The notes beneath the pieces are model-generated. The model worked only from the letters and a program-made list of their open reading frames with translations. It did not search any database and was not told where the DNA came from. The position numbers and the translations under genes are program-made. This document shows, piece after piece, positions 7,704-62,280 of a DNA stretch of 64,000 nt. The first letter of the stretch is position 1. Each line of letters begins with the position of its first letter. The DNA is taken from positions 62,001 to 126,000 of IMG/VR virus record IMGVR_UViG_3300046694_000136. One strand, written 5' to 3'.

Positions 7704-7941
7704 TCCGGAAACTATCACGATTACTTTGCCTAAAGGTAAGCTGGATTCCATTGAATCAATTACTACTCGGCCTATCGAGGGATATCCTGGGGTATCTGAA
7801 GTACTGATCAATGGGGAACCCGGTCGTCTGCTGGTCGACCTTTCTCAATTCGAAAACAATGAAAATGATCTGCGACGTCTGTACACCGGTGTCGGGGAAG
7901 GTTTTATCAAGCACCATGTGCGAAAAAATAACAGGAGCTAG
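7696..7941 (+). CDS. Small hypothetical protein within the Ntn cluster
   Basis: 81 aa, GGAGG RBS, overlaps the upstream stop. Confidence 0.7.
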   Translation: MDNPETITITLPKGKLDSIESITTRPIEGYPGVSEVLINGEPGRLLVDLSQFENNENDLRRLYTGVGEGFIKHHVRKNNRS

Positions 7942-7942
7942 T

Positions 7943-8458
7943 ATGACTACTGTAGCTTGGGATGGTAAATTGTTGGTAGCTGACTCACAGTCCACTGTTA
8001 ACGGGCTGGCTACACTTAGTGTCTCTACAAAGATCTTCCTTCCCCCTGAAGGGGTTCTTACTAAATGGACGATCCAAGGAGAGTCGGTCGCGGCAATTGG
8101 TCTAGCGGGTTGTGCCATGGCACAATATACCTTTACGGACATGCTTGCGGAGGGGCTTACCCACCGTAGTCCAGTCCCTAAAGAATCCAGCTCCTTTGCC
8201 GCGTTGGTCATTACCCATACCGGTAAATGCTTCCGGTTTAACTATCGGAAGAAAGATGGCGAGGGTCCAAGCGTCCAATTGAGTTTTTCAAACGGCAAGG
8301 ACGCAATCGGTAGTGGGGGTAGTTTTGCCAATGCTGTGATGAGTATCAATATCGACGCTGGTTTGGCAGTACAGGCGGCTATCAATGTTGATCCTAGCAG
8401 CGGTGGTTCGCTTCAAATCTGGAACTCTGCTGAGCCAGGTGTTATTTCCATTCGTTGA
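7943..8458 (+). CDS. Proteasome beta/HslV-like Ntn hydrolase, copy 2
   Basis: Probable start ATG 7943 (AGGAG RBS): MTTVAWDG..ADS, TKI, IGSGG, DPSSGG. Confidence 0.8.
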   Translation: MTTVAWDGKLLVADSQSTVNGLATLSVSTKIFLPPEGVLTKWTIQGESVAAIGLAGCAMAQYTFTDMLAEGLTHRSPVPKESSSFAALVITHTGKCFRFNYRKKDGEGPSVQLSFSNGKDAIGSGGSFANAVMSINIDAGLAVQAAINVDPSSGGSLQIWNSAEPGVISIR

Positions 8459-8472
8459 GGTTAAGGGTAATT

Positions 8473-9066
8473 ATGACAACAGTAGCGTGGGACGGTAATA
8501 CCTTAGCAGCAGATACTCTTTACGTGGCCGGTACTCGTAAGCTGGGAGGGGATTATGAAAAGATCCTGCTTCCGGAAGATACTCCATGGACAGTTAACGG
8601 TAAACCCATTCTGGCAGTTGGCTTCAGTGGGTCGATTGCGACTATCCCATGCATCAAGAAAGTTCTGGAAGCTGACGCAGTACCCGGGGTTGATCCAGCA
8701 TGTGGAGATTACAGCTTCACGATCTTGTTGGTAACCGATAAGAAAGAAGTTTACTACTGGAACTACGGCTCCACTGCTAAAGGCGAAGTGATTAACGAGC
8801 TCTTCGCTGTGGAAGGTAATCACGCTATTGGTAGCGGCGGGATTTACGGTCTAGGGGTCATGGCCATTAAAGGCGATGCAATCAACGCAGTGAAAGCCGG
8901 TATCAAAATCGATGTCAACAGCGGCGGTTACATTGACGTGTGGTCTTTCGAGACTCCTCGTCTGCTGACACGGATTAACCCCAAGGGCGGTGAAATCATC
9001 TCTGCCAAACAAAACACACCTGCTCCCGAAAAGAGCAAAGCTATCTTATGCGCCGTGAACGGCTGA
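8473..9066 (+). CDS. Proteasome beta/HslV-like Ntn hydrolase, copy 3
   Basis: Probable start ATG 8473: MTTVAWDG..AADT, EKI, IGSGG, DVNSGG. Confidence 0.8.
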   Translation: MTTVAWDGNTLAADTLYVAGTRKLGGDYEKILLPEDTPWTVNGKPILAVGFSGSIATIPCIKKVLEADAVPGVDPACGDYSFTILLVTDKKEVYYWNYGSTAKGEVINELFAVEGNHAIGSGGIYGLGVMAIKGDAINAVKAGIKIDVNSGGYIDVWSFETPRLLTRINPKGGEIISAKQNTPAPEKSKAILCAVNG

Positions 9067-9175
9067 GTTAGCCATCGCTCCATCGAGATCGTGGTGGGTT
9101 ATGGGAGGTTAGACACCACACCCCCTCTTTACAGACTATTCTCTATCTGGTCTGTGAGGGTTGCCTACAAAACTT

Positions 9176-9230
9176 CCCCCCTCTCCCCCTACTCCTTCGG
9201 GGGTGGGGGTTAGGGGGTTATATTTTTATT
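9176..9230 (+). terminator. Intrinsic terminator
   Basis: C-rich/G-rich stem around a TTCG loop, followed by a T-rich tract. Confidence 0.75.
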
Positions 9231-17807: not shown

Positions 17808-17900
17808 TAGTACGAATCGAAGATATAAATGTGTGTAGGCATACACTGTGCGATTCTGCTAACAGTCACCCTTTCTTAAGAAAAGATGGAGTTATACCTT

Positions 17901-19886
17901 ATGGCCGTTCAACAAAACCGCAAAGGCGCGGGCAGCAATTCCTGGGATGGTAAAAATGGCAACGCCGCAGAGTTCTCCGCTCTGTCGGAACTCTTCCATA
18001 CCCCTTCCATGTCGTCCGACAACCGCCAGTTGCCGGAAGTTGATGAGGTGATCGAGATCCTCAAGAAGGGCTACACTGCGATGAGTGAATCCACCATCCA
18101 GCCTGCCCAACGCGCAATCATCCCGACTGTCGACAAAGTGTCGCCTGTCATCAGCTCCACCCTGCCGGGTCTGGTAATGCACCGCCTGGTCGGCCAGAGC
18201 GTCTGGGTCATGCTGGTACTGTTCTCCAACAAGGACAACGCCATCGCGACCGAAACCGTTCAAGTGCTTCAGCCTATGGGCATGCCGCACAAGACCTCGG
18301 TCCTGCTGACCCCGACCAACTACTTCACCCACGAGCTGGTCGACAACCTGAAGAAGCACTTCAAGGGCGTCCTGGAAAACGAAGGCCTGAAAGGCGAAGT
18401 CGAGATCATCAACCTGATGACCGAAGACTTGGAAATGCTGCAACACTCCCAGGCCGGTGAGCCGAAAGAGCGTCCACAGCGCATCGCCAACTACCTGAAA
18501 GGCGAGTGGGAAACCGCGGTGTTCTGCAAACTGTCCTCGGAGTATCCGAAGCACAAGCAGACTCTGCCTTCGCCGTTCAAAGATCCTGATGCACCGTACG
18601 GCAAAGACGGCTGGGCCGAAGCACGCGTTACCGCAATCGACGGCAAGGTCTCCCGCGCCGGCACGCTGATGCCGTCCAACATGGAACTGGTGATTTCGAC
18701 CACCAACAACCCGAACAGCAGCAACAACAACCAGAACAACCCGAACTCGAAAGGGATCGTGCGCGCTCTGGCTACTGTTCAGTTGTCGGCCATCAGTTAC
18801 CAAATGCACATGCAGAACATCGCGGCCATCTCGCAGGCCGGCGGTCAAGCCGATGCTATCCAGGCGTTCCTGGGCATCAACGGCGGCATGTACATGAACG
18901 GCTACCGTCCGCTGCACCCGGTCATCACTCTCGACCACGCCAACGCGGAAGAGATGATGAACTACAACAACGGCCTGTTCCCGCACTACTACGCGCTGTT
19001 CGCGCTGATGTGCACCAACACCGACTACATCTTCACTGAACCACTGCGTCGCGCCAACGTCGGCTCCCGGGGCAACCTGAGCTCCTTCGAACCGCGCATC
19101 GAACAGCTGGTTGCTCAGGCGTTCACCGGTGTTCGTCCAGTAATGGACGACAAGACCATCCTGGACACCGAAGCAGTCAACAAGTGGATCCACCAGAACA
19201 TCTCGCCGAACGCTCTGTTCCGCAGCAACGTGATCCTGGGCGGCCTGTCGTCCCCGGTGAACAAGCACCTGGAAGTTCTGTCGGATCCGGTCCTGGCCAA
19301 CCGTCAGTCGGCGGTACAAACCATGATCGCGGTAATGGACGCAATCTCCAAAGGTCGTTTCTCGCAGATCGTTGCGGAAAACGTCAAGTCTGGCAAAGGC
19401 TGGAAGCCAGGCGATGTTGCGCTGCACCGCACGAAGATGATCGCGGTGAACGGTCTCGCGAAGAACCCACAAGGTCGCGAGCTGAACACCCTGGAAGTCG
19501 ACGAAATGTACCTCGGTACTCACAAAGGTAAGGCTGGGCTGCAACAGTCCATGAACTACCTGAGCGTGCTGTACGGCACCAACAACGAAGAAGTTCGTTC
19601 GCGTTGCCAGAAGCTGCGTATCGAAATGACCACCGGTCTGTTCGATGGTCACGTGCACATCAACAACTTCGGTTACTCCTGCGTCTGGGATCCGCATCTG
19701 ATGGCTGTTATCGGTGCCGCTCTGTCGGAAATCGGTACGCTGAACGTTGCGAACACCTACAGCTCGATGCGTCCGAACAACATGGCGTTCATGCCAATGG
19801 CTGGTCTGCAAACCGTTACGTCGGTCGGCAACAGCAACAACATGAACCTCCTGGGTGGTTTCGGTAACGGCGGGATCTGGGGCTAA
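17901..19886 (+). CDS. chmA: Chimallin, major nuclear shell protein (phiKZ gp54/PhuN)
   Basis: About 660 aa, very strong codon bias, early promoter, immediately upstream of nvRNAP beta'-N, low-complexity termini; start set by GGAG RBS. Confidence 0.85.
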   Translation: MAVQQNRKGAGSNSWDGKNGNAAEFSALSELFHTPSMSSDNRQLPEVDEVIEILKKGYTAMSESTIQPAQRAIIPTVDKVSPVISSTLPGLVMHRLVGQSVWVMLVLFSNKDNAIATETVQVLQPMGMPHKTSVLLTPTNYFTHELVDNLKKHFKGVLENEGLKGEVEIINLMTEDLEMLQHSQAGEPKERPQRIANYLKGEWETAVFCKLSSEYPKHKQTLPSPFKDPDAPYGKDGWAEARVTAIDGKVSRAGTLMPSNMELVISTTNNPNSSNNNQNNPNSKGIVRALATVQLSAISYQMHMQNIAAISQAGGQADAIQAFLGINGGMYMNGYRPLHPVITLDHANAEEMMNYNNGLFPHYYALFALMCTNTDYIFTEPLRRANVGSRGNLSSFEPRIEQLVAQAFTGVRPVMDDKTILDTEAVNKWIHQNISPNALFRSNVILGGLSSPVNKHLEVLSDPVLANRQSAVQTMIAVMDAISKGRFSQIVAENVKSGKGWKPGDVALHRTKMIAVNGLAKNPQGRELNTLEVDEMYLGTHKGKAGLQQSMNYLSVLYGTNNEEVRSRCQKLRIEMTTGLFDGHVHINNFGYSCVWDPHLMAVIGAALSEIGTLNVANTYSSMRPNNMAFMPMAGLQTVTSVGNSNNMNLLGGFGNGGIWG

Positions 19887-41515: not shown

Positions 41516-42367
41516 ATGGCAACTAAAAAACAAAGCATGAAAGCCAAAAAAGACACTCGCAAGAAGACGAAAGCGAAGGTTCGGGTTAAATCATCGCAGA
41601 GCAGTGTCTTCGGTCAACGTAGCGCCGGTGGCTTCCACGACAAACGCGTCAGCATCTACGACCTGATCAACGACGTCAAAAGCGGCGCCACTCACATCAA
41701 GTCCAAACTGGCCAAAGGCGAGATTCCTGAAGTAGGGATCGATCGTCTGGACTTCCTGAAAGGTATTCAGGAAACCATGGGCCAAGTGATCAAGATGCAC
41801 GGCGGTATCGCGGTGTACATGCTGCTGGCTGAGAACGAAAGCCGCTTCCAGATCACTCCTGAGAACGCCGAGCGTATCGAGGGCTACGAGCGTTCCGTTG
41901 TTCGCTTTGTAGAAAACGTTGATGCCGTGGTTCTGCTGGACCAAGCCAAGAAACTGCCAGAAGATTACATCGAACTGGTTATCGACATGGCCGACGTACT
42001 GCGTGACCTGATGGTTATCCAGCACATTCCTACTTACGAGATGCTCAAGCGTAAGGAACAGGAAATCAACCGCTACATCACCGAACACCTGCCAACCGGT
42101 ATGGACGTCTTCGAATACACCCGTGGTCTCCACGAAGAGCGTATCAAGCAGGTCGGTCCTCTGTACGTGACCACTGAAGGCGTCAGCGCCAAAGAGATCG
42201 CCGACATGGTCCTGATGACTCAGGATCTCATGAACGAGAATGGTGAAGACGTTGTTGTCTCCGTTGACACCAGCAACATCAAGCCGGACGAGCATCCTGA
42301 CGTCGAGCCGGTTAAAGATATCCCGCAAGACCCTATTACCGAACAACGTATCAAGGACGCTCAATAA
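41516..42367 (+). CDS. Hypothetical protein with Lys-rich N-terminus and acidic C-terminus
   Basis: 283 aa, AAGGA RBS. Confidence 0.75.
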   Translation: MATKKQSMKAKKDTRKKTKAKVRVKSSQSSVFGQRSAGGFHDKRVSIYDLINDVKSGATHIKSKLAKGEIPEVGIDRLDFLKGIQETMGQVIKMHGGIAVYMLLAENESRFQITPENAERIEGYERSVVRFVENVDAVVLLDQAKKLPEDYIELVIDMADVLRDLMVIQHIPTYEMLKRKEQEINRYITEHLPTGMDVFEYTRGLHEERIKQVGPLYVTTEGVSAKEIADMVLMTQDLMNENGEDVVVSVDTSNIKPDEHPDVEPVKDIPQDPITEQRIKDAQ

Positions 42368-44082
42368 TGGCTGACGAAAACAAACCGACCGAACCCACGG
42401 AACAGTCCGCTCTGGCCAGCGCTGTAGCAAGCGCCATTCCTCCGGCACCCAAGGTCTTCAGTTACGGCGATACCCACACCCCCGAGAACACCCCACTGAA
42501 GGTTCCGGTAAACTCTCTGCCTGAATCGGTAGGTAAGCTGGAAGACAGCGACGTCACTCGTGGTCAGGGCTTCACCACGGTGTACATCGGTAACAGTAAG
42601 GAAGACTACACTGCTGTTCAGGAACTGGTTTCCATCTGGTTCTCGATCAGCAGCATCCGTAACGCTTCCAAAGGCAACCGTATCAACCAGAGCATGCTCA
42701 ACGCTGCCATGGCTGAATGGAAACAGTACTGTGATGACAACTTCCCGGGCGTTACTTACGACGAGATGGAAGCGCGTGCGGCGGATATGTACCGCTACCT
42801 CCAGAACACGTCGGACCCGATCATGGTCAAGACCCGCATGATGCTGGAAGATGTTTCCAACGTCTACAAGGCCTCTGACACCATCGTGGTGGGTGATATC
42901 ACCGGCATGATCCCGAGTGCTACGGCTAAACCCAACAGCCTGTCTGAAGAGATGGAGCGTGGCGCTTCCCGCGGTAACTCCAGTCCGTACCTGTACTCGG
43001 TAGGTCTGCGTAACAGCTTCTGTAAGTTCCAGTTCTCCCGTGGTCACAAGACCGATGCGGCGATCATGATCAACGAGATCAACGCGACCATTCGTGGTTA
43101 CGTTCGTACCGTCGGCGGTAATTCTCTGGTGTTGTCGACCATTGCCGGTTACCGTGCTGTCTGGAACTGGCTGGTTCCTTATATCACCAGCTCCAGTGTT
43201 GACGGCGTTGCTGACTTCAACGATCTGGCTCGGGTTATCCGTTTCCGTGACATGGAAGTTATCCTGGCTGCGCTGCTGGCGTCCTTCGAAGACGATGAAG
43301 CCAACATGGACCTGCGTTGCTTCAACATGGGCTGTGACTGGAGCTCGTACGAGAAGATCAACCCTGCGCTGCTGGTTCGCGCTCGTCCGGTAGCTCATAC
43401 CGAACAAGAGCTGGCTGTTCTGGGTAACATCTTCAACGGTACTGCCCGCTACAACATCCGTCAGGTTCTGGACTTGATCGACAATGCCACCTACGGCATC
43501 GAAGATAACTACCTGTACAACGAGAAGCAGACCATCCGCTTGACTATGGGTTCGACTTCGTTGGCTGAGGCCTTCGCTGCGCTGGACTACATGGTTACTC
43601 AGGTGGATCCGCAGATCGCCAGTGCACGTAGCACCCTGACCGACCAGGCTGCTCTGGAAGCTCAGATCGGTATCATCCTGAGCGGTGTTGGTGGTTGCGA
43701 GTTCCTGCATTGGGTTAAAGAGTTCGCTCTGCTGCCTGAACCGGGTACCGAAGGCGAGCCGAAGATCTTCAAGCGTCGTGACTCTGACCAGCTCGAGTTC
43801 AACAAAGGCCTGCGTGGCGTGTTGAAGGTAGACCCTTACCTCGACAACCAAGTTACCCGGTTCGCGTACACCGTTGGTCCGTACATGACCAAGACCTTTA
43901 TTGGTCTGCGTAACTGCAAGTGCCCGAAATGTGGCAAGGGTGCTGAAGAAGTGAACGGTCAAGCTCGCAACTTGGGCTACACCCCGATCGATGTGTTCAT
44001 GACTTTTTTTACCCATACCCAGTTCATGTTGGTGCGTCAAGCGGAAGCGAAACAGCGAGTCGAGCTCGCAGCCCGCTCTTAA
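42367..44082 (+). CDS. Conserved Zn-ribbon protein (phiKZ gp77-like), putative tail/baseplate assembly chaperone
   Basis: 571 aa; CFNMGC and CPKC pairs; ends with FF encoded on a T7 slippery run. Confidence 0.6.
   Translation: MADENKPTEPTEQSALASAVASAIPPAPKVFSYGDTHTPENTPLKVPVNSLPESVGKLEDSDVTRGQGFTTVYIGNSKEDYTAVQELVSIWFSISSIRNASKGNRINQSMLNAAMAEWKQYCDDNFPGVTYDEMEARAADMYRYLQNTSDPIMVKTRMMLEDVSNVYKASDTIVVGDITGMIPSATAKPNSLSEEMERGASRGNSSPYLYSVGLRNSFCKFQFSRGHKTDAAIMINEINATIRGYVRTVGGNSLVLSTIAGYRAVWNWLVPYITSSSVDGVADFNDLARVIRFRDMEVILAALLASFEDDEANMDLRCFNMGCDWSSYEKINPALLVRARPVAHTEQELAVLGNIFNGTARYNIRQVLDLIDNATYGIEDNYLYNEKQTIRLTMGSTSLAEAFAALDYMVTQVDPQIASARSTLTDQAALEAQIGIILSGVGGCEFLHWVKEFALLPEPGTEGEPKIFKRRDSDQLEFNKGLRGVLKVDPYLDNQVTRFAYTVGPYMTKTFIGLRNCKCPKCGKGAEEVNGQARNLGYTPIDVFMTFFTHTQFMLVRQAEAKQRVELAARS
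44004..44010 (+). other. Predicted programmed -1 ribosomal frameshift site (T TTT TTT)
   Basis: In-frame X XXY YYZ heptamer; the -1 frame is open 43947-44579. Confidence 0.65.
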
Positions 44083-44579
44083 TCACGGGGCAGGCTTTCC
44101 ATAACGATCAGTACAGGCAAGCGTTCGCTAACTTAGCGGACATCGATCAGTCTATCTTCACGACTGAACAGCTTGCCTTGAACAAAGATCTGTTATACGA
44201 CATGAATATGGGTTATATCGACGTCAAGCGAATTCGACCCGGTCATGGTGCTCTCTATTACGAGGCCGAGAATGAGTACAATCATCCTTGGTCAATGGAA
44301 TACGTGATGGAACAGTATCATTTCCATAAGCTGCACGAGTTCATGACGTTGACGGAATACCTGAACACACCTGCCTTTATGGTTAAGCGAATCCTTAAAG
44401 GCAGTGCTAAAGGCAAAGCTGATCGCGCTAAATGGGATGAGGAGAAAAGGAAGGAAGCTGAGCGGCTCAAGAAGGGTCAGTTCAAGGACACTTCCAATCC
44501 CAACATGCCTATTGAAGATGAGCAACTTGCTGAAGCATGGAAACTTGCCAATACAGAAATGGGAGGCAAGAACCAATAA
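44010..44579 (+). CDS. -1 frame extension of the upstream gene (ORF track 44178..44579)
   Basis: No RBS or convincing start of its own; the frame reaches back across the slippery site. Confidence 0.62.
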   Translation, partial: YPYPVHVGASSGSETASRARSPLLITGQAFHNDQYRQAFANLADIDQSIFTTEQLALNKDLLYDMNMGYIDVKRIRPGHGALYYEAENEYNHPWSMEYVMEQYHFHKLHEFMTLTEYLNTPAFMVKRILKGSAKGKADRAKWDEEKRKEAERLKKGQFKDTSNPNMPIEDEQLAEAWKLANTEMGGKNQ

Positions 44580-44590
44580 GCTTATATCTC

Positions 44591-44620
44591 AGGCCTCCCC
44601 AAAGGGAGGCCTGGGTATTT
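44591..44620 (+). terminator. Probable terminator
   Basis: AGGCCTCCC-AAA-GGGAGGCCT hairpin followed by TATTTT. Confidence 0.65.
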
Positions 44621-45296: not shown

Positions 45297-46307
45297 ATGA
45301 GTCAGGAAAACGCAATGCAAGACGATATCGTTATCGACGAGAACGAAGAGTTCGTCGCACCTGAATCCAGCCACATCGAGCTGGTCTTCCAAGCCCTCGG
45401 TGACACTGTCAATGCCGTTGCTGGTACCGAAGGTCTGACCACCGCTCAACTGTACTTCCACGGCGTTCTGAACGCGTCTGGCCAGCTGAGCTACACCGAC
45501 TCGGTCTCCGGTGCTGAAGGCTTCTTCGCCAACGTGAAAGAAGGTGCTTCCAAAGCCATCGCTTACATCAAGAAGATGGTCAAGGAAATCTGGGGCTTCT
45601 TCTTCAAGAAGCAAGGTCCGGAAGAAGCCAAGGCTGTTAAGGAAGCTGTTGCTGGTACCGCTGCCGACCTCGCCAACGTCGAGAAAGTCAAATCCGGCCT
45701 GAAGAGCGCCGCTGGTTCCGACTCGAAAGAGCTGGTTGAACACATCAGTAAGGCGAGCACCATCGCTGAACTGAACACCGTGTCGAAAGACGTGGCGAAG
45801 AAGAACACCAAGGCTCAGCAAGGTCTGGTCGTCAAGATCAACCAACTGGTTGAATCGCTGGAAGCCGAAGTCAAGCTGGCTGAAGAAGTCGAAACCGAAG
45901 CCAAGAAGTCCGGCGAAGCAGGTTACACCGCTTGGGCATCGGGCGTGAAAGGCGGCGTGTCGGGTACTCAGTCCCTGATCACCACCCTGAAAGGTATTCG
46001 CGATCTGGCTGACCTGAAGGCTGCTGAAGACACCCTCGGTGCACTGAAGTCTCACGTCGAGATCATCAGCCGCGCTCTGGAAGCCTCCGGCGGTACCGAA
46101 TCCCGCGTTCAGGGCATGATCGACACCCTGTCCACCCTGGATGGCAACAACTCCGCCAGCGACGAACAGAAGAAGCAAGGCGACGACAACCTGAAAGCTC
46201 TCCAGCTTTTCGTTAAGTCGGCTGCTCGCTACTCTGCTCTCCTGAAGCGCACCCTTTCCCATATGAAATCTGTCAACACTGCCACCGGCAAAGTGTTCGG
46301 CGTTTAA
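45297..46307 (+). CDS. Internal head protein, processed (paralog A)
   Basis: Acidic propeptide with VAGTE and VSGAE sites, YIKKM...W.FFFK helix. Confidence 0.72.
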   Translation: MSQENAMQDDIVIDENEEFVAPESSHIELVFQALGDTVNAVAGTEGLTTAQLYFHGVLNASGQLSYTDSVSGAEGFFANVKEGASKAIAYIKKMVKEIWGFFFKKQGPEEAKAVKEAVAGTAADLANVEKVKSGLKSAAGSDSKELVEHISKASTIAELNTVSKDVAKKNTKAQQGLVVKINQLVESLEAEVKLAEEVETEAKKSGEAGYTAWASGVKGGVSGTQSLITTLKGIRDLADLKAAEDTLGALKSHVEIISRALEASGGTESRVQGMIDTLSTLDGNNSASDEQKKQGDDNLKALQLFVKSAARYSALLKRTLSHMKSVNTATGKVFGV

Positions 46308-46317
46308 GGAGTCCTCG

Positions 46318-47361
46318 ATGGACGAAGTAATGAGCGAAGACGAACTGAGCATGGAAGTGGCTATCCCTGCTCCGGAACACATCGAAACCATCCTCGACGG
46401 CGTCAGCGACTCCCTCGACCAGGTGGCGGGTACCGAAAGCTTGACCAACGCACAGGTTTACCTGGGTTCGGTTCTGGCTGCCAACGGTTACATCCGCAAG
46501 AACCAGGTTGGTCAGGAAGGCTTCTTGGCGAAAGCCGGTGAAGGTTTCAAAGCCGCTGTTGCCTACGTCAAGAAGATGTTCACCAACCTCTGGGACTTCT
46601 TCTTCAAGCGTGACGCACCGAAGCTGGTAGCTGAGGCCAAGGAAGAGGTCAAGGCTGCTGAAGACGCCCTCAAGGTCATCGAGTCCGGCGGTAGCAACGA
46701 GAAAGAAACCACTGAAGCGCTGACCAACATGCGCAAAGTGATTCTGGCTCTGAGCCACGAACCTGACACCAACAAGTCTGCTCTGGATCAGATCCTGAAA
46801 GAAGCGGACGAAGCGATGAAGGGCGATCAAGCCAAGAAGAAAGCTGCCGTTCTCATGATCGGTCGTGAACTTCCGAAGCTGAACAAGCGCTCGACTACCG
46901 CCATGAAGAAACGTGTCGACGACATGGTTCGTGTCCTGGTTGCGACCGAGAAGGCTGTCGACGCTGTTATCGACAAAGGCGAAGGTGTCAACGCTGCTTC
47001 GATCGAAAGGGTCTACGGCGCCAAGCTGAAGTCTGAGAAAGGTGAAATCGCTGGTGTCCTTGCCAAGTTCCAAAAGGCCAGTAGCGAAACCACTCCGGCT
47101 AACCTGAAGGACTGCTACACGTACACCTCGCAATCCATTGAAGCGGCAAGCCGTGCGCACACATCGCTGAAAGAGGGCGAGACCTCCATCAAGGCTGAAA
47201 TCGCCAAGCTGGAAGCCGGTGAGGAGTCTACTCTCAAGAGTAGTGTTCAAGACCTCAAACGTCTGCTGAGTTCGGTTACCTCTTTGGCCCAAGTGACCAA
47301 GGAACTGCTGGGCTCCAGCCGTCAGTTGCTGAAAACCGGTAACAAGGCTTTCGGCTACTAA
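46318..47361 (+). CDS. Internal head protein, processed (paralog B)
   Basis: VAGTE, VGQE, YVKKM...W.FFFK; N-terminus aligns with paralog A. Confidence 0.72.
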   Translation: MDEVMSEDELSMEVAIPAPEHIETILDGVSDSLDQVAGTESLTNAQVYLGSVLAANGYIRKNQVGQEGFLAKAGEGFKAAVAYVKKMFTNLWDFFFKRDAPKLVAEAKEEVKAAEDALKVIESGGSNEKETTEALTNMRKVILALSHEPDTNKSALDQILKEADEAMKGDQAKKKAAVLMIGRELPKLNKRSTTAMKKRVDDMVRVLVATEKAVDAVIDKGEGVNAASIERVYGAKLKSEKGEIAGVLAKFQKASSETTPANLKDCYTYTSQSIEAASRAHTSLKEGETSIKAEIAKLEAGEESTLKSSVQDLKRLLSSVTSLAQVTKELLGSSRQLLKTGNKAFGY

Positions 47362-61272: not shown

Positions 61273-62280
61273 ATGAGTTCAGGTAACAAGACTCAATTGG
61301 CTGTTTGCCTTGAACAGCATCTGGAACTGTCGCGGTCTAACGATGAGCTGGGCCGTATCGGTCGTAGTCTCATTGCGGTGGCCGGGACTGAAGACTTCCA
61401 GAACGTTAAGGACAATGCAGTCAGCGCGTTGAACGCTGTAGGACGCGGGCTGTTCGCTGCGGGTAAATGGGTAGGCGGTGGTACTCTCGACATCGCCTTG
61501 AAAGGGTTCACTGTTGCAGGTAACCAACTGAGTAAGTCTTTCTCGGAAAACGGTACGCTCATTAAGAACGTGCTGAAGGACGTTGCTAAGACGTCGGATA
61601 AAGACCTCAAGGTTCCTGCGGCTAAAGCGTCCCTGATCACAGTCTCGGGCGATGCCAGTCATATCCTTCAAGACATGGAGGTGTTGGCCAAGGCACTCGA
61701 GCTGTGGGTTGCGCACAACAAAGACGTAATGAACTTTCTGGATAAGGAACTCATTACTCTGAAGAAGCTGAAGTCTGCCAACAAGGCTGAACAGATCCAT
61801 GCGATCATCGATGAGTTCGAAGGGTTGAAGTACCCTGAGTTCAAGTTGGGGAACAACATGGGTAAAGCTGTTAAGTCGGACGTGCTTCCGGGTGGCCGTG
61901 TCTTTATCTTCTCTGATGAGGGCACCCCGAAGTACTCTATGGGTGGCGATGCTCCTTCTGGTGAGGCCAAAACCTTGATGATGTCGAAGAGTGAAATCTC
62001 CGATGTCATGAACAAATTGGATAAGGTTAACGAACTCCATTTGAAGGTTAAGGAATCCTATGACGGTTACACGGCTTTCATCAAGTCGTGGGCTGATATG
62101 GTCAAGGGTGTCGATGGCAACCTGAGCCAGTTGGACAAGGTCAGCAAAACGATCCTTGGTGAATGCGAGAAACTCATGAGCGGCAATCAAGGCGCACTCG
62201 CATTTTATAGCGGATTCACTCCACGTGTTGTCGGCTATGTCGACAAGTACATTCATGGTGTGCTTGGGGTCTTCGCTTAA
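61273..62280 (+). CDS. Internal head protein, processed
   Basis: VAGTE site; SDVLPGG motif typical of phiKZ inner-head paralogs. Confidence 0.68.
   Translation: MSSGNKTQLAVCLEQHLELSRSNDELGRIGRSLIAVAGTEDFQNVKDNAVSALNAVGRGLFAAGKWVGGGTLDIALKGFTVAGNQLSKSFSENGTLIKNVLKDVAKTSDKDLKVPAAKASLITVSGDASHILQDMEVLAKALELWVAHNKDVMNFLDKELITLKKLKSANKAEQIHAIIDEFEGLKYPEFKLGNNMGKAVKSDVLPGGRVFIFSDEGTPKYSMGGDAPSGEAKTLMMSKSEISDVMNKLDKVNELHLKVKESYDGYTAFIKSWADMVKGVDGNLSQLDKVSKTILGECEKLMSGNQGALAFYSGFTPRVVGYVDKYIHGVLGVFA

Follow-up and report, generated by a model that had tools for sequence, protein, structure and literature searches.

The tail assembly chaperones of phages lambda (G/GT) and P2 (E/E+E′) are made by −1 programmed ribosomal frameshifting. 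The slip occurs close to the 3′ end of the upstream open reading frame and gives two products with the same N-terminal body, the longer of which carries an extra domain that has no start of its own. The products are roughly 100-150 and 250-300 aa, the genes lie between the tail tube and tape-measure genes, and the site is conserved although the sequences diverge. P2 also slips on a T-run. In E. coli dnaX, a −1 slip on the homopolymeric heptamer A_AAA_AAG sets a fixed ratio of two forms of one protein, tau and gamma; this slip is helped by an upstream SD and a downstream hairpin and gives the shorter product. In gene 10A/10B of phages T7 and T3, a −1 slip near the end of the major capsid protein gene adds a short C-terminal extension to a minor fraction of the protein, with no separately conserved domain annotated as its own gene. 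The T4 proteins gp26 and gp51 represent a different case. Both belong to PF12322 (T4_baseplate), matching the profile at 1e-64 and 4e-52, and are listed as hub assembly chaperones; gp51 is needed for assembly but is absent from the particle (PMC3004832). T4 makes related long and short forms, as the gp26/gp51 paralogs and as gp26/gp26′ from an internal start, and no frameshift is annotated in the T4 genes.

A site that fits the −1 frameshift pattern is found in a core gene of nucleus-forming (phiKZ-like) jumbo phages. The stretch of DNA analysed, termed the window, comprises 64,000 nucleotides of IMG/VR record IMGVR_UViG_3300046694_000136 (positions 62,001 to 126,000). Gene A reads ACT TTT TTT ACC, with the slippery run of T's 24 codons before its TAA stop. 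After a −1 slip, reading continues YPYPVHVGASSGSETASR... for 189 codons, and 548 + 189 residues give a predicted fusion of 737 aa. The sequence-only reading had pointed to this slippery run, the open −1 frame and the fusion, and had proposed the junction peptide VFMTFF-YPYPVHVGASSGSETASR; what it observed is confirmed, and the peptide is correct. In phiKZ the predicted junction reads ...STFF-YFGGLEVKPDGVVNDLR. Chimallin is also present in the window. The features of the locus are collected below.

Features of the gene A/gene B region, in window coordinates
Position	Strand	Feature	Supporting observations
42367..44082	+	Gene A, 0-frame product of 571 aa; ortholog of phiKZ gp77, EL gp47 and Goslar gp081, i.e. 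chimallivirus core gene cg18; conserved core at about residues 190-550, containing Cys318, Cys323, Cys519 and Cys522	Open reading frame list; phrog_4585 at E 4e-91; tblastn orthologs; conserved synteny with vRNAP beta′ (gp80), gp79 and gp78; core-gene table; AF2 model with pLDDT 92.1; conserved Cys
43947..44579	+	−1 frame, stop-free up to the stop at 44577-79	Open-frame analysis
44004..44010	+	Slippery heptamer T_TTT_TTT, an in-phase X_XXY_YYZ site with its first T at codon position 3 (ACT at 44002-4); P-site and A-site codons both UUU (Phe547, Phe548)	Sequence and phase check; T_TTT_TTT in 24 genomes, T_TTT_TTC in 11 and T_TTT_TTA in 1
44010..44082	+	Dual-coding overlap; 0 frame encodes the C-terminal helix of A (residues 549-571), −1 frame the start of the extension (YPYP...RSPL)	Translations; helix 543-570 in the model; Pro2, Pro4 and Leu23 of the −1 product invariant in 19 sequences while the overlapping 0-frame residues vary; near-invariant nucleotide block around the site
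44010..44579	+	−1-frame extension (gene B), 189 codons plus the stop; can be translated only as a fusion to residues 1-548 of A	Open-frame analysis; phrog_19747 at E 2e-23; orthologs in the same frame and ending at the same stop in all loci
44062..44097	+	Possible hairpin with the 0-frame stop codon (UAA, 44080-82) in its loop; not universal in the family	9 of 23 lineages below the 10th percentile of native-window controls, combined p ~1e-3; no consensus structure by RNAalifold
44083..44201	+	Apparent intergenic gap that is really the coding linker of the fusion in the −1 frame; predicted to be disordered	Variable columns by −1-frame codon position 12, 8 and 26 of about 42 each among 75-100% identical relatives; no conserved start or SD; pLDDT below 50 for extension residues 1-42
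44178	+	TTG, start given by the mechanical open reading frame list	Reads CTG, TTT or TTA in 75-85% identical relatives; no SD-like motif
44202 and 44208	+	ATG codons within B	No SD-like motif
44187..44460	+	Conserved small, mostly helical domain of the extension, motifs NMGY, HPWS and YLxxP; a Lys/Glu-rich tail follows, running to 44576	Alignment; PHROG match covers extension residues 58-160; low-confidence model has its best region at residues ~95-150; only its own orthologs found by fold search
44588..44615	+	Terminator-like hairpin (12-bp stem, 9 G-C pairs) with a T-rich tail, 9 nt after the stop of the extension	No such site between A and B, so both frames sit on one transcript; similar hairpins visible after the small gene in EL and RisingSun

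Conservation of the T-run and of the overlap in orthologs, which had been set beforehand as a test of the recoding, was found in every lineage. An in-phase T_TTT_TTN is kept at the same position in 36 of 36 related genomes, 16-40 codons before the stop of A, even where the second codon has changed from Phe to Leu (the genome termed Kc263, T_TTT_TTA). In each, the −1 frame opens only 6-66 nt upstream of the heptamer and runs uninterrupted to the stop of the annotated small downstream gene. The genomes include EL, phiKZ (gp77/gp76.4), Goslar (gp081/082), SPN3US, OBP, RisingSun, Vibrio, Aeromonas and Ralstonia phages and metagenomic contigs, some as low as ~15-20% identity. A megablast search of the region against phage genomes found nothing, the closest named relative of the window being EL at about 41% protein identity, and a word-based homolog search for A returned only close relatives. 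One of two sequence patterns used to collect further loci covers the FF site, and those loci are somewhat biased towards having it; loci obtained by tblastn, profile search and exact look-up are not biased in this way.

The codon choice at the site goes against bias. TTT is used for only 1 of the 21 other Phe codons of gene A in the window, and for 0 of 25 in the related locus L024. The codon before the two Phe codons always ends in T, although its amino acid varies (T, S, N, A, L). The joint chance over 19 loci is about 1e-26, though the loci are not fully independent. Phe547 and Phe548 are at least 90% conserved in 139 homologs, and a profile search finds 991 cluster representatives, of which those listed mostly end 12-25 residues after the same FF motif.

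No conserved start codon or SD sequence was found for B. Of the genes in the window, 22 of 33 have an SD-like motif, including all five neighbouring genes. Annotators have placed the start of B 36-60 codons from the site. None of the 19 GenBank records examined marks slippage, and searches for a described frameshift in phiKZ-like phages, which did not extend to subscription journals, found neither a paper describing it nor protein-level evidence for the fusion.

A stimulatory RNA element was not found. No conserved or unusually stable structure lies 5-9 nt downstream of the heptamer, single-sequence z-scores are not significant, RNAalifold predicts no pairs, no stable or conserved structure was detected within 100 nt, no Rfam family matches and no SD-like motif is visible upstream. 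Such an element is not obligatory for phage slip sites. The hairpin around the 0-frame stop is enriched among lineages but is not claimed as part of the mechanism.

As with lambda G/GT and P2 E/E′, a −1 slip near the 3′ end would give two products sharing an N-terminal body, which for gene A is inferred from sequence only. The protein differs from these chaperones in that it is about five times larger than G or E, its body has a Cys4 site and the slip removes a 23-residue C-terminal helix. It is not a member of a Phage_TAC_* or Phage_P2_GpE profile family: Pfam gives no hit for A, for 88 distant homologs or for 19 extensions. There are only weak leads, a TAC_4 model that matches residues 165-301 of a neighbouring cluster's model at TM 0.55 by the TAC, and P2_GpE as a language-model neighbour of the extension at 0.80, a kind of neighbour that is often chance. 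Nor does the gene lie between tube and tape-measure genes; its neighbours in the window, EL, phiKZ and distant members are vRNAP beta′, a head protein, helicase and DNA polymerase. With respect to dnaX, the slip at this locus gives the longer product and no stimulators were found. The T7/T3 case likewise involves a −1 slip near the end of a phage structural-module gene, but a different protein family and function.

The fold of A is predicted with confidence, but sequence searches of the PDB, Foldseek against PDB and Swiss-Prot AFDB, and a wide VIA-align search gave nothing or only generic helical-hairpin matches, and there is no solved structure to compare with. The best fold and language-model match for the conserved core, about residues 200-550, is with predicted structures of the T4 gp26/gp51 family. 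Foldseek hits in BFVD to 'baseplate hub assembly protein, T4-like' and 'baseplate hub subunit' reach prob 0.94-1.0, with TM only ~0.45-0.52 by target; eight or more baseplate-hub models are matched in all. An AFDB 'Baseplate protein' matches residues 248-524 at prob 0.99, and an ESM Atlas PF12322 cluster gives TM 0.44/0.45. Of the 100 nearest language-model clusters, 46 carry PF12322, the best scoring 0.89 with 192/256 shared features. Both families have four conserved Cys including a CPxCG(K) motif, although the order of the two Cys pairs differs. A is more than twice as long, with a lineage-specific helical N-terminal part. No hit to the PF12322 profile was found at E ≤ 0.01 in A or in 88 homologs, and hhalign of A profiles against a T4 gp51 profile gives prob 58% and E 1e-4, but over the 12-column CPxC motif only. 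The phiKZ record gives gp77 no 'structural' note, unlike its neighbours gp79-81.

The extension yields less. Its AF2 model is poor (pLDDT 56). The idea that it corresponds to the gp51 C-terminal domain, or to P2 E′, found no support by hhalign against a gp51 profile that includes this domain. The 'ZipA-like cell division protein' label on some orthologs of A is judged spurious, as it has no support in any search performed.

The interpretation offered by the sequence-only reading is thus partly supported. Its core claim, a programmed −1 frameshift that fuses the 571-aa protein to the downstream frame, is strongly supported by the comparative evidence. The label of G/GT-type tail assembly chaperone is supported only in part, and the resemblance of the extension to E′ could not be reproduced. 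Zinc binding, which it also proposed, is plausible in that four Cys are invariant or nearly so across 139 homologs, but is inferred from sequence alone. A tail or baseplate assembly role remains a reasonable reading, reached by a different route, and is unproven.

The explanation considered more likely than not is that gene A and the 'gene' after it form one recoded unit. Most ribosomes would translate A to its stop, while a fraction slip back one base on U_UUU_UUU, where both Phe-tRNAs can re-pair perfectly, and continue in the −1 frame. In the longer form the last helix of A would be replaced by a disordered linker, a small conserved helical domain and a charged tail. The downstream domain would exist only as this fusion, in a fixed low ratio to A. 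The analysis demonstrates the site, its phase, the open frame, its conservation across the whole phiKZ-like family and coding constraint on the −1 frame; that the slip is ribosomal rather than transcriptional, and that it is a minority event, are inferences. Function is inferred from predicted fold, whereby A would be a large, probably zinc-binding relative of the T4 gp26/gp51 chaperones. The two forms would then act like lambda G and GT, a common body that holds an assembly substrate and a rarer form whose extra domain recruits a partner.

A core gene present in every nucleus-forming jumbo phage, and in a family of about 1000 cluster representatives at 50% identity, appears to be mis-annotated as two genes in all 19 GenBank records examined. 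The small 'gene' (phiKZ gp76.4, EL gp48, Goslar gp082, SPN3US gp40) would not be an independent protein. This changes how knock-outs, antisense knock-downs, Tn-seq and proteomics of these model phages should be designed and read, and gives a concrete, testable function, a hub or tail assembly chaperone of the T4 gp26/gp51 type, for a protein of unknown function. Conservation down to ~15-20% protein identity makes this an unusually ancient recoding site, and with no detectable RNA stimulator it is useful for studying how U-run heptamers work in bacteria. A more far-reaching hypothesis, which is tentative, is that phiKZ-like jumbo phages, and by extension T4-type myoviruses, solve the 'G/GT problem' with an unrelated, large zinc-binding chaperone family. 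Jumbo phages would make the short and long forms from one gene by an ancient −1 frameshift conserved throughout the family, and T4 would achieve the same two-form logic with the paralog pair gp26/gp51 (and gp26′). If so, this would identify the long-missing tail-assembly chaperone of these phages and show that frameshift-set stoichiometry evolved independently on a different protein scaffold.

Of the alternatives, the one that survives best, though it is only a possibility, is that the recoding is real but that A is not a tail or baseplate chaperone. It might instead be a zinc-binding factor of the virion-RNA-polymerase, head or replication module in which it is always embedded, for example a packaging or assembly factor for injected proteins. 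Synteny with the vRNAP beta′ subunit (phiKZ gp80), head protein gp79, helicase and nvRNAP subunits holds even in the most distant members, and no sequence-profile link to PF12322 or TAC families was found. On the other hand, every annotated fold neighbour with high probability is a baseplate-hub protein and language-model neighbours are dominated by PF12322. Chimallivirus core blocks mix structural and replication genes, so context is weak evidence.

Transcriptional slippage is unlikely. Here the phage or host RNA polymerase would stutter on the T6-T7 run and insert one extra U in a fraction of mRNAs, with standard translation yielding the same fusion. The site is a pure homopolymer run in all 36 genomes, no downstream stimulatory structure was found, and these phages use their own unusual multisubunit RNA polymerases. 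However, eleven lineages have only six T's followed by C, and one has T6 followed by A, while known bacterial slippage sites usually have runs of 8-9 or more. Every variant still fits the X_XXY_YYZ tRNA re-pairing rule, including the HIV-type U_UUU_UUA, and the run is never lengthened beyond 7, although a longer run would favour polymerase slippage.

Two ordinary genes, with B translated from the Met of the conserved NMGY motif or by re-initiation after the stop of A, and the T-run merely encoding a conserved Phe-Phe, are very unlikely. The 19 GenBank records do annotate two separate genes, an ATG is present at the NMGY column in 13 of 19 aligned sequences, and some genes in the window also lack an SD. 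But none of the 13 ATGs has an SD-like motif and no other start column is conserved. About 65 codons upstream of that Met are kept open in the same frame back to the heptamer, and only that far, in 36/36 genomes; this stretch shows third-position-biased substitution and invariant residues directly after the site, and the TTT TTT with a preceding T contradicts the local codon bias.

A homopolymer miscount, to which some sequencing platforms are prone, is effectively refuted, as the same arrangement occurs in 36 independent genomes from many laboratories and platforms with both T7 and T6C versions in the same phase, the 0-frame tail after the site is itself conserved (an EALS-type ending) and modelled as a confident helix, and two 100% identical independent metagenome contigs exist.

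Gene A contains a run of seven T's close to its 3′ end. In the frame of gene A this reads ACT TTT TTT ACC and forms an in-phase X_XXY_YYZ heptamer 24 codons before the TAA stop. After a −1 slip the reading continues YPYPVHVGASSGSETASR... for 189 codons, which gives a predicted product of 548 + 189 = 737 aa. The descriptive statements of the sequence-only reading concerning the T-run, the open −1 frame and the predicted fusion are all correct, and the observation is confirmed. Coordinates of the features are listed in the table.

Positions of gene A, the slip site and other features discussed
Feature	Position	Strand	Description
Gene A	42367-44082	+	571 aa
T_TTT_TTT heptamer	44004-44010		run of seven T's
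−1 open frame	43947-44579		free of stops
TTG of the small gene (B)	44178		start assigned mechanically
Hairpin at the stop of A	44062-44097		0-frame stop codon (UAA, 44080-82) in the loop
Terminator-like hairpin	44588-44615		12-bp stem, 9 G-C pairs, T-rich tail; 9 nt after the stop of the −1 extension
Chimallin	17886-19886		nuclear shell protein, phrog_4795, E 2e-101
Tandem paralogs	45297-46307 and 46318-47361		336 and 347 aa
T4 gp26 and gp51 (T4 record)	7803-8429 and 8480-9229	− and +	both PF12322

The genome encodes a chimallin, split multisubunit RNA polymerase subunits, with four RNAP beta-type subunits in the window, and two DNA polymerase genes, and it is therefore a nucleus-forming phiKZ-like phage. 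No close DNA relative was found among deposited phages. Gene A is 41% identical in amino acid sequence to gp47 of Pseudomonas phage EL, the closest named phage, to which the genome is only distantly related, and 75-100% identical to a few metagenomic contigs. The local gene order consists of virion RNAP beta′, a head protein, a ∼280-aa gene, gene A and then a small gene (B), and this order is the same in EL, RisingSun, FishSpeaker, Vibrio, Photobacterium, Klebsiella, Kosakonia, Aeromonas and Edwardsiella phages, OBP and phiKZ. The phiKZ ortholog is gp77, which is followed by gp76.4. gp77 is core gene cg18 of Chimalliviridae (Goslar gp081, RAY gp267) and is listed as a hypothetical protein (Prichard et al. 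2023, Table S3).

The end of gene A was examined in 36 distinct genomes: 19 deposited phages, 14 IMG/VR contigs and 3 contigs encoding very distant profile hits. Every one has an in-phase T_TTT_TTN 16-40 codons before the stop, at the homologous position just after the CPxC...TPID motif. Twenty-four display T_TTT_TTT, eleven T_TTT_TTC and one (Kc263) T_TTT_TTA. In Kc263 the second codon has become Leu, but the heptamer is still slippery. In every genome the −1 open reading frame opens only 6-66 nt upstream of the heptamer and runs without a stop into the annotated downstream small gene, in the same frame and to the same stop. One of the search patterns used to collect loci included the FF motif, which biases those loci; the loci obtained by tblastn, HMM profile search and exact look-up are free of that bias and behave identically. 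Very distant members of the family on metagenomic contigs (L040, L042/L043 and L044; profile E ∼1e-20) keep the heptamer, the −1 open reading frame and the synteny with RNAP subunits and a helicase. DUF1353 and macro-domain genes recur next to the pair, as also in Goslar gp083.

Conservation of the site exceeds what protein coding requires. Elsewhere in gene A, TTT is used for 1 of 21 Phe codons in the window and for 0 of 25 in the locus termed L024, and most genomes prefer TTC, yet the first Phe codon of the site is TTT in all genomes. The preceding codon always ends in T, although its amino acid varies (Thr, Ser, Asn, Ala, Leu). The product of the per-genome chance values over 19 loci is about 1e-26; the loci are not fully independent, but synonymous sites are saturated at these distances. 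Among sequences 41-100% identical in protein, about 35 nt around the site are almost invariant.

Several lines of sequence evidence support translation of the −1 frame from the site. Between the stop of A and NMGY, the first strongly conserved motif of the small gene, close relatives differ at 12, 8 and 26 of about 42 columns at −1-frame codon positions 1, 2 and 3, respectively, which is the signature of purifying selection on a protein. In a 19-sequence alignment of the −1 products, Pro2, Pro4 and Leu23 are invariant. These lie inside the overlap and across the stop of A, and the 0-frame residues encoded by the same nucleotides are not invariant. The TTG assigned mechanically as a start for B reads CTG, TTT or TTA in relatives 75-85% identical. 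The only start-type codon conserved in the alignment is the Met of NMGY, present in 13 of 19 sequences, and none of the 13 has an SD-like motif. In the window, 22 of 33 genes have an SD-like motif, including all five neighbouring genes, but none of the candidate starts of B does. The annotated start of the small gene varies between GenBank records from 36 to 60 codons after the site, and none of the 19 records examined marks a joined or slippage CDS. A strong terminator-like hairpin follows B and none separates A from B. EL and RisingSun have comparable hairpins after their small gene.

With respect to mechanism, U_UUU_UUN lets both the P-site and the A-site tRNAs re-pair after a −1 shift, and every variant seen obeys that rule. 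A stimulatory element was not found. The 100 nt downstream fold no better than shuffled sequences, RNAalifold shows no consensus pairs in 19 lineages and Rfam has no match. A hairpin that places the stop codon of A in its loop recurs with different sequences in roughly half of 23 lineages, and 9 of 23 fall below the 10th percentile of native-window controls (combined p ∼1e-3). However, it is not universal and is absent in EL, Miami, phiKZ and Wellington-like phages. Recoding is inferred from sequence with high confidence, and a ribosomal slip is its probable cause. Transcriptional slippage on the T-run would give the same protein and cannot be excluded from sequence, but the six-T variants and the strict heptamer rule make it the less likely option, and it is considered improbable.

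A profile of A finds 991 cluster representatives (E ≤ 1e-3) among 1.84 billion. Of the 150 listed, most end 12-25 residues after a conserved CPxC...IPxD...FF motif. In 139 sequences, Cys318, Cys323 and Cys519 are invariant and Cys522, Phe547 and Phe548 are at least 90% conserved. The distant members sit in the same RNAP/helicase synteny, and the family is therefore that of phiKZ-like phages in the broad sense. With this alignment AlphaFold2 gives a confident model of A (pLDDT 92.1, pTM 0.91). The slip site lies at the start of the last helix of the model (543-570), so the fusion form would lose that helix. The extension models poorly (pLDDT 56) and appears as a ∼45-residue disordered linker, a small helical domain carrying the HPWS and YLxxP motifs, and a charged tail. 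No recognisable relatives of the extension were found by fold search, by profile comparison with gp51 or in Pfam.

No relative of A was found among solved structures by sequence or by fold. Among predicted structures, the hits that follow the jumbo-phage orthologs are 'baseplate hub assembly protein, T4-like', 'baseplate hub subunit' and 'baseplate protein', with Foldseek probabilities of 0.94-1.0 and TM of ∼0.45-0.52 by target. An AFDB 'Baseplate protein' aligns to residues 248-524, and an ESM Atlas cluster with PF12322 members aligns at TM 0.44/0.45. Independently, 46 of the 100 nearest language-model clusters carry PF12322; the best scores 0.89 with 192 of 256 shared features, above the guide value of 170 features. 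PF12322 is the family of both T4 gp26 and gp51, which are thus paralogs. Both are listed as hub assembly chaperones, and gp51 is absent from the particle (PMC3004832). The gp51 family has four invariant Cys (CPxC at 85-88, CC at 185-186). Gene 26 also has an annotated internal product, 26′, so that T4 too makes related long and short hub-chaperone forms. Some orthologs of A are already labelled 'baseplate hub' or 'baseplate protein', whereas several others carry the label 'putative ZipA-like cell division protein', which no search performed here supports. On the other hand, A has no Pfam hit, and profile-profile comparison with gp51 aligns only the CPxC motif.

In its logic the pair would work like lambda G/GT and P2 E/E+E′, where a −1 slip near the end of a chaperone gene adds a recruiting domain to a minority of molecules. 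It is not a member of those families: there is no profile match, the size is very different and the gene does not lie between tube and tape-measure genes. The best-supported family link is to T4 gp26/gp51, at the level of predicted fold only. That A belongs to the PF12322 superfamily is considered somewhat more likely than not, and that A and the A-B fusion act in hub or tail assembly, a role inferred from these predictions, is about an even possibility. The frameshift interpretation of the sequence-only reading is strongly supported, but its proposal of a G/GT-type tail chaperone is supported only in part, and by a different route. Frameshift-made chaperone pairs are textbook examples. The present case sits in a different and much larger protein family, is conserved throughout the phiKZ-like phages down to ∼15-20% identity and is unannotated in the records examined. 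No description of it was found in the literature searched, although subscription journals were not covered and a prior description cannot be fully excluded.

Downstream of this locus, two adjacent genes encode proteins with clearly similar N-terminal regions and are therefore tandem paralogs. The first matches phrog_21850, a family of unknown function. EL has one such gene, and some relatives have none at this position.
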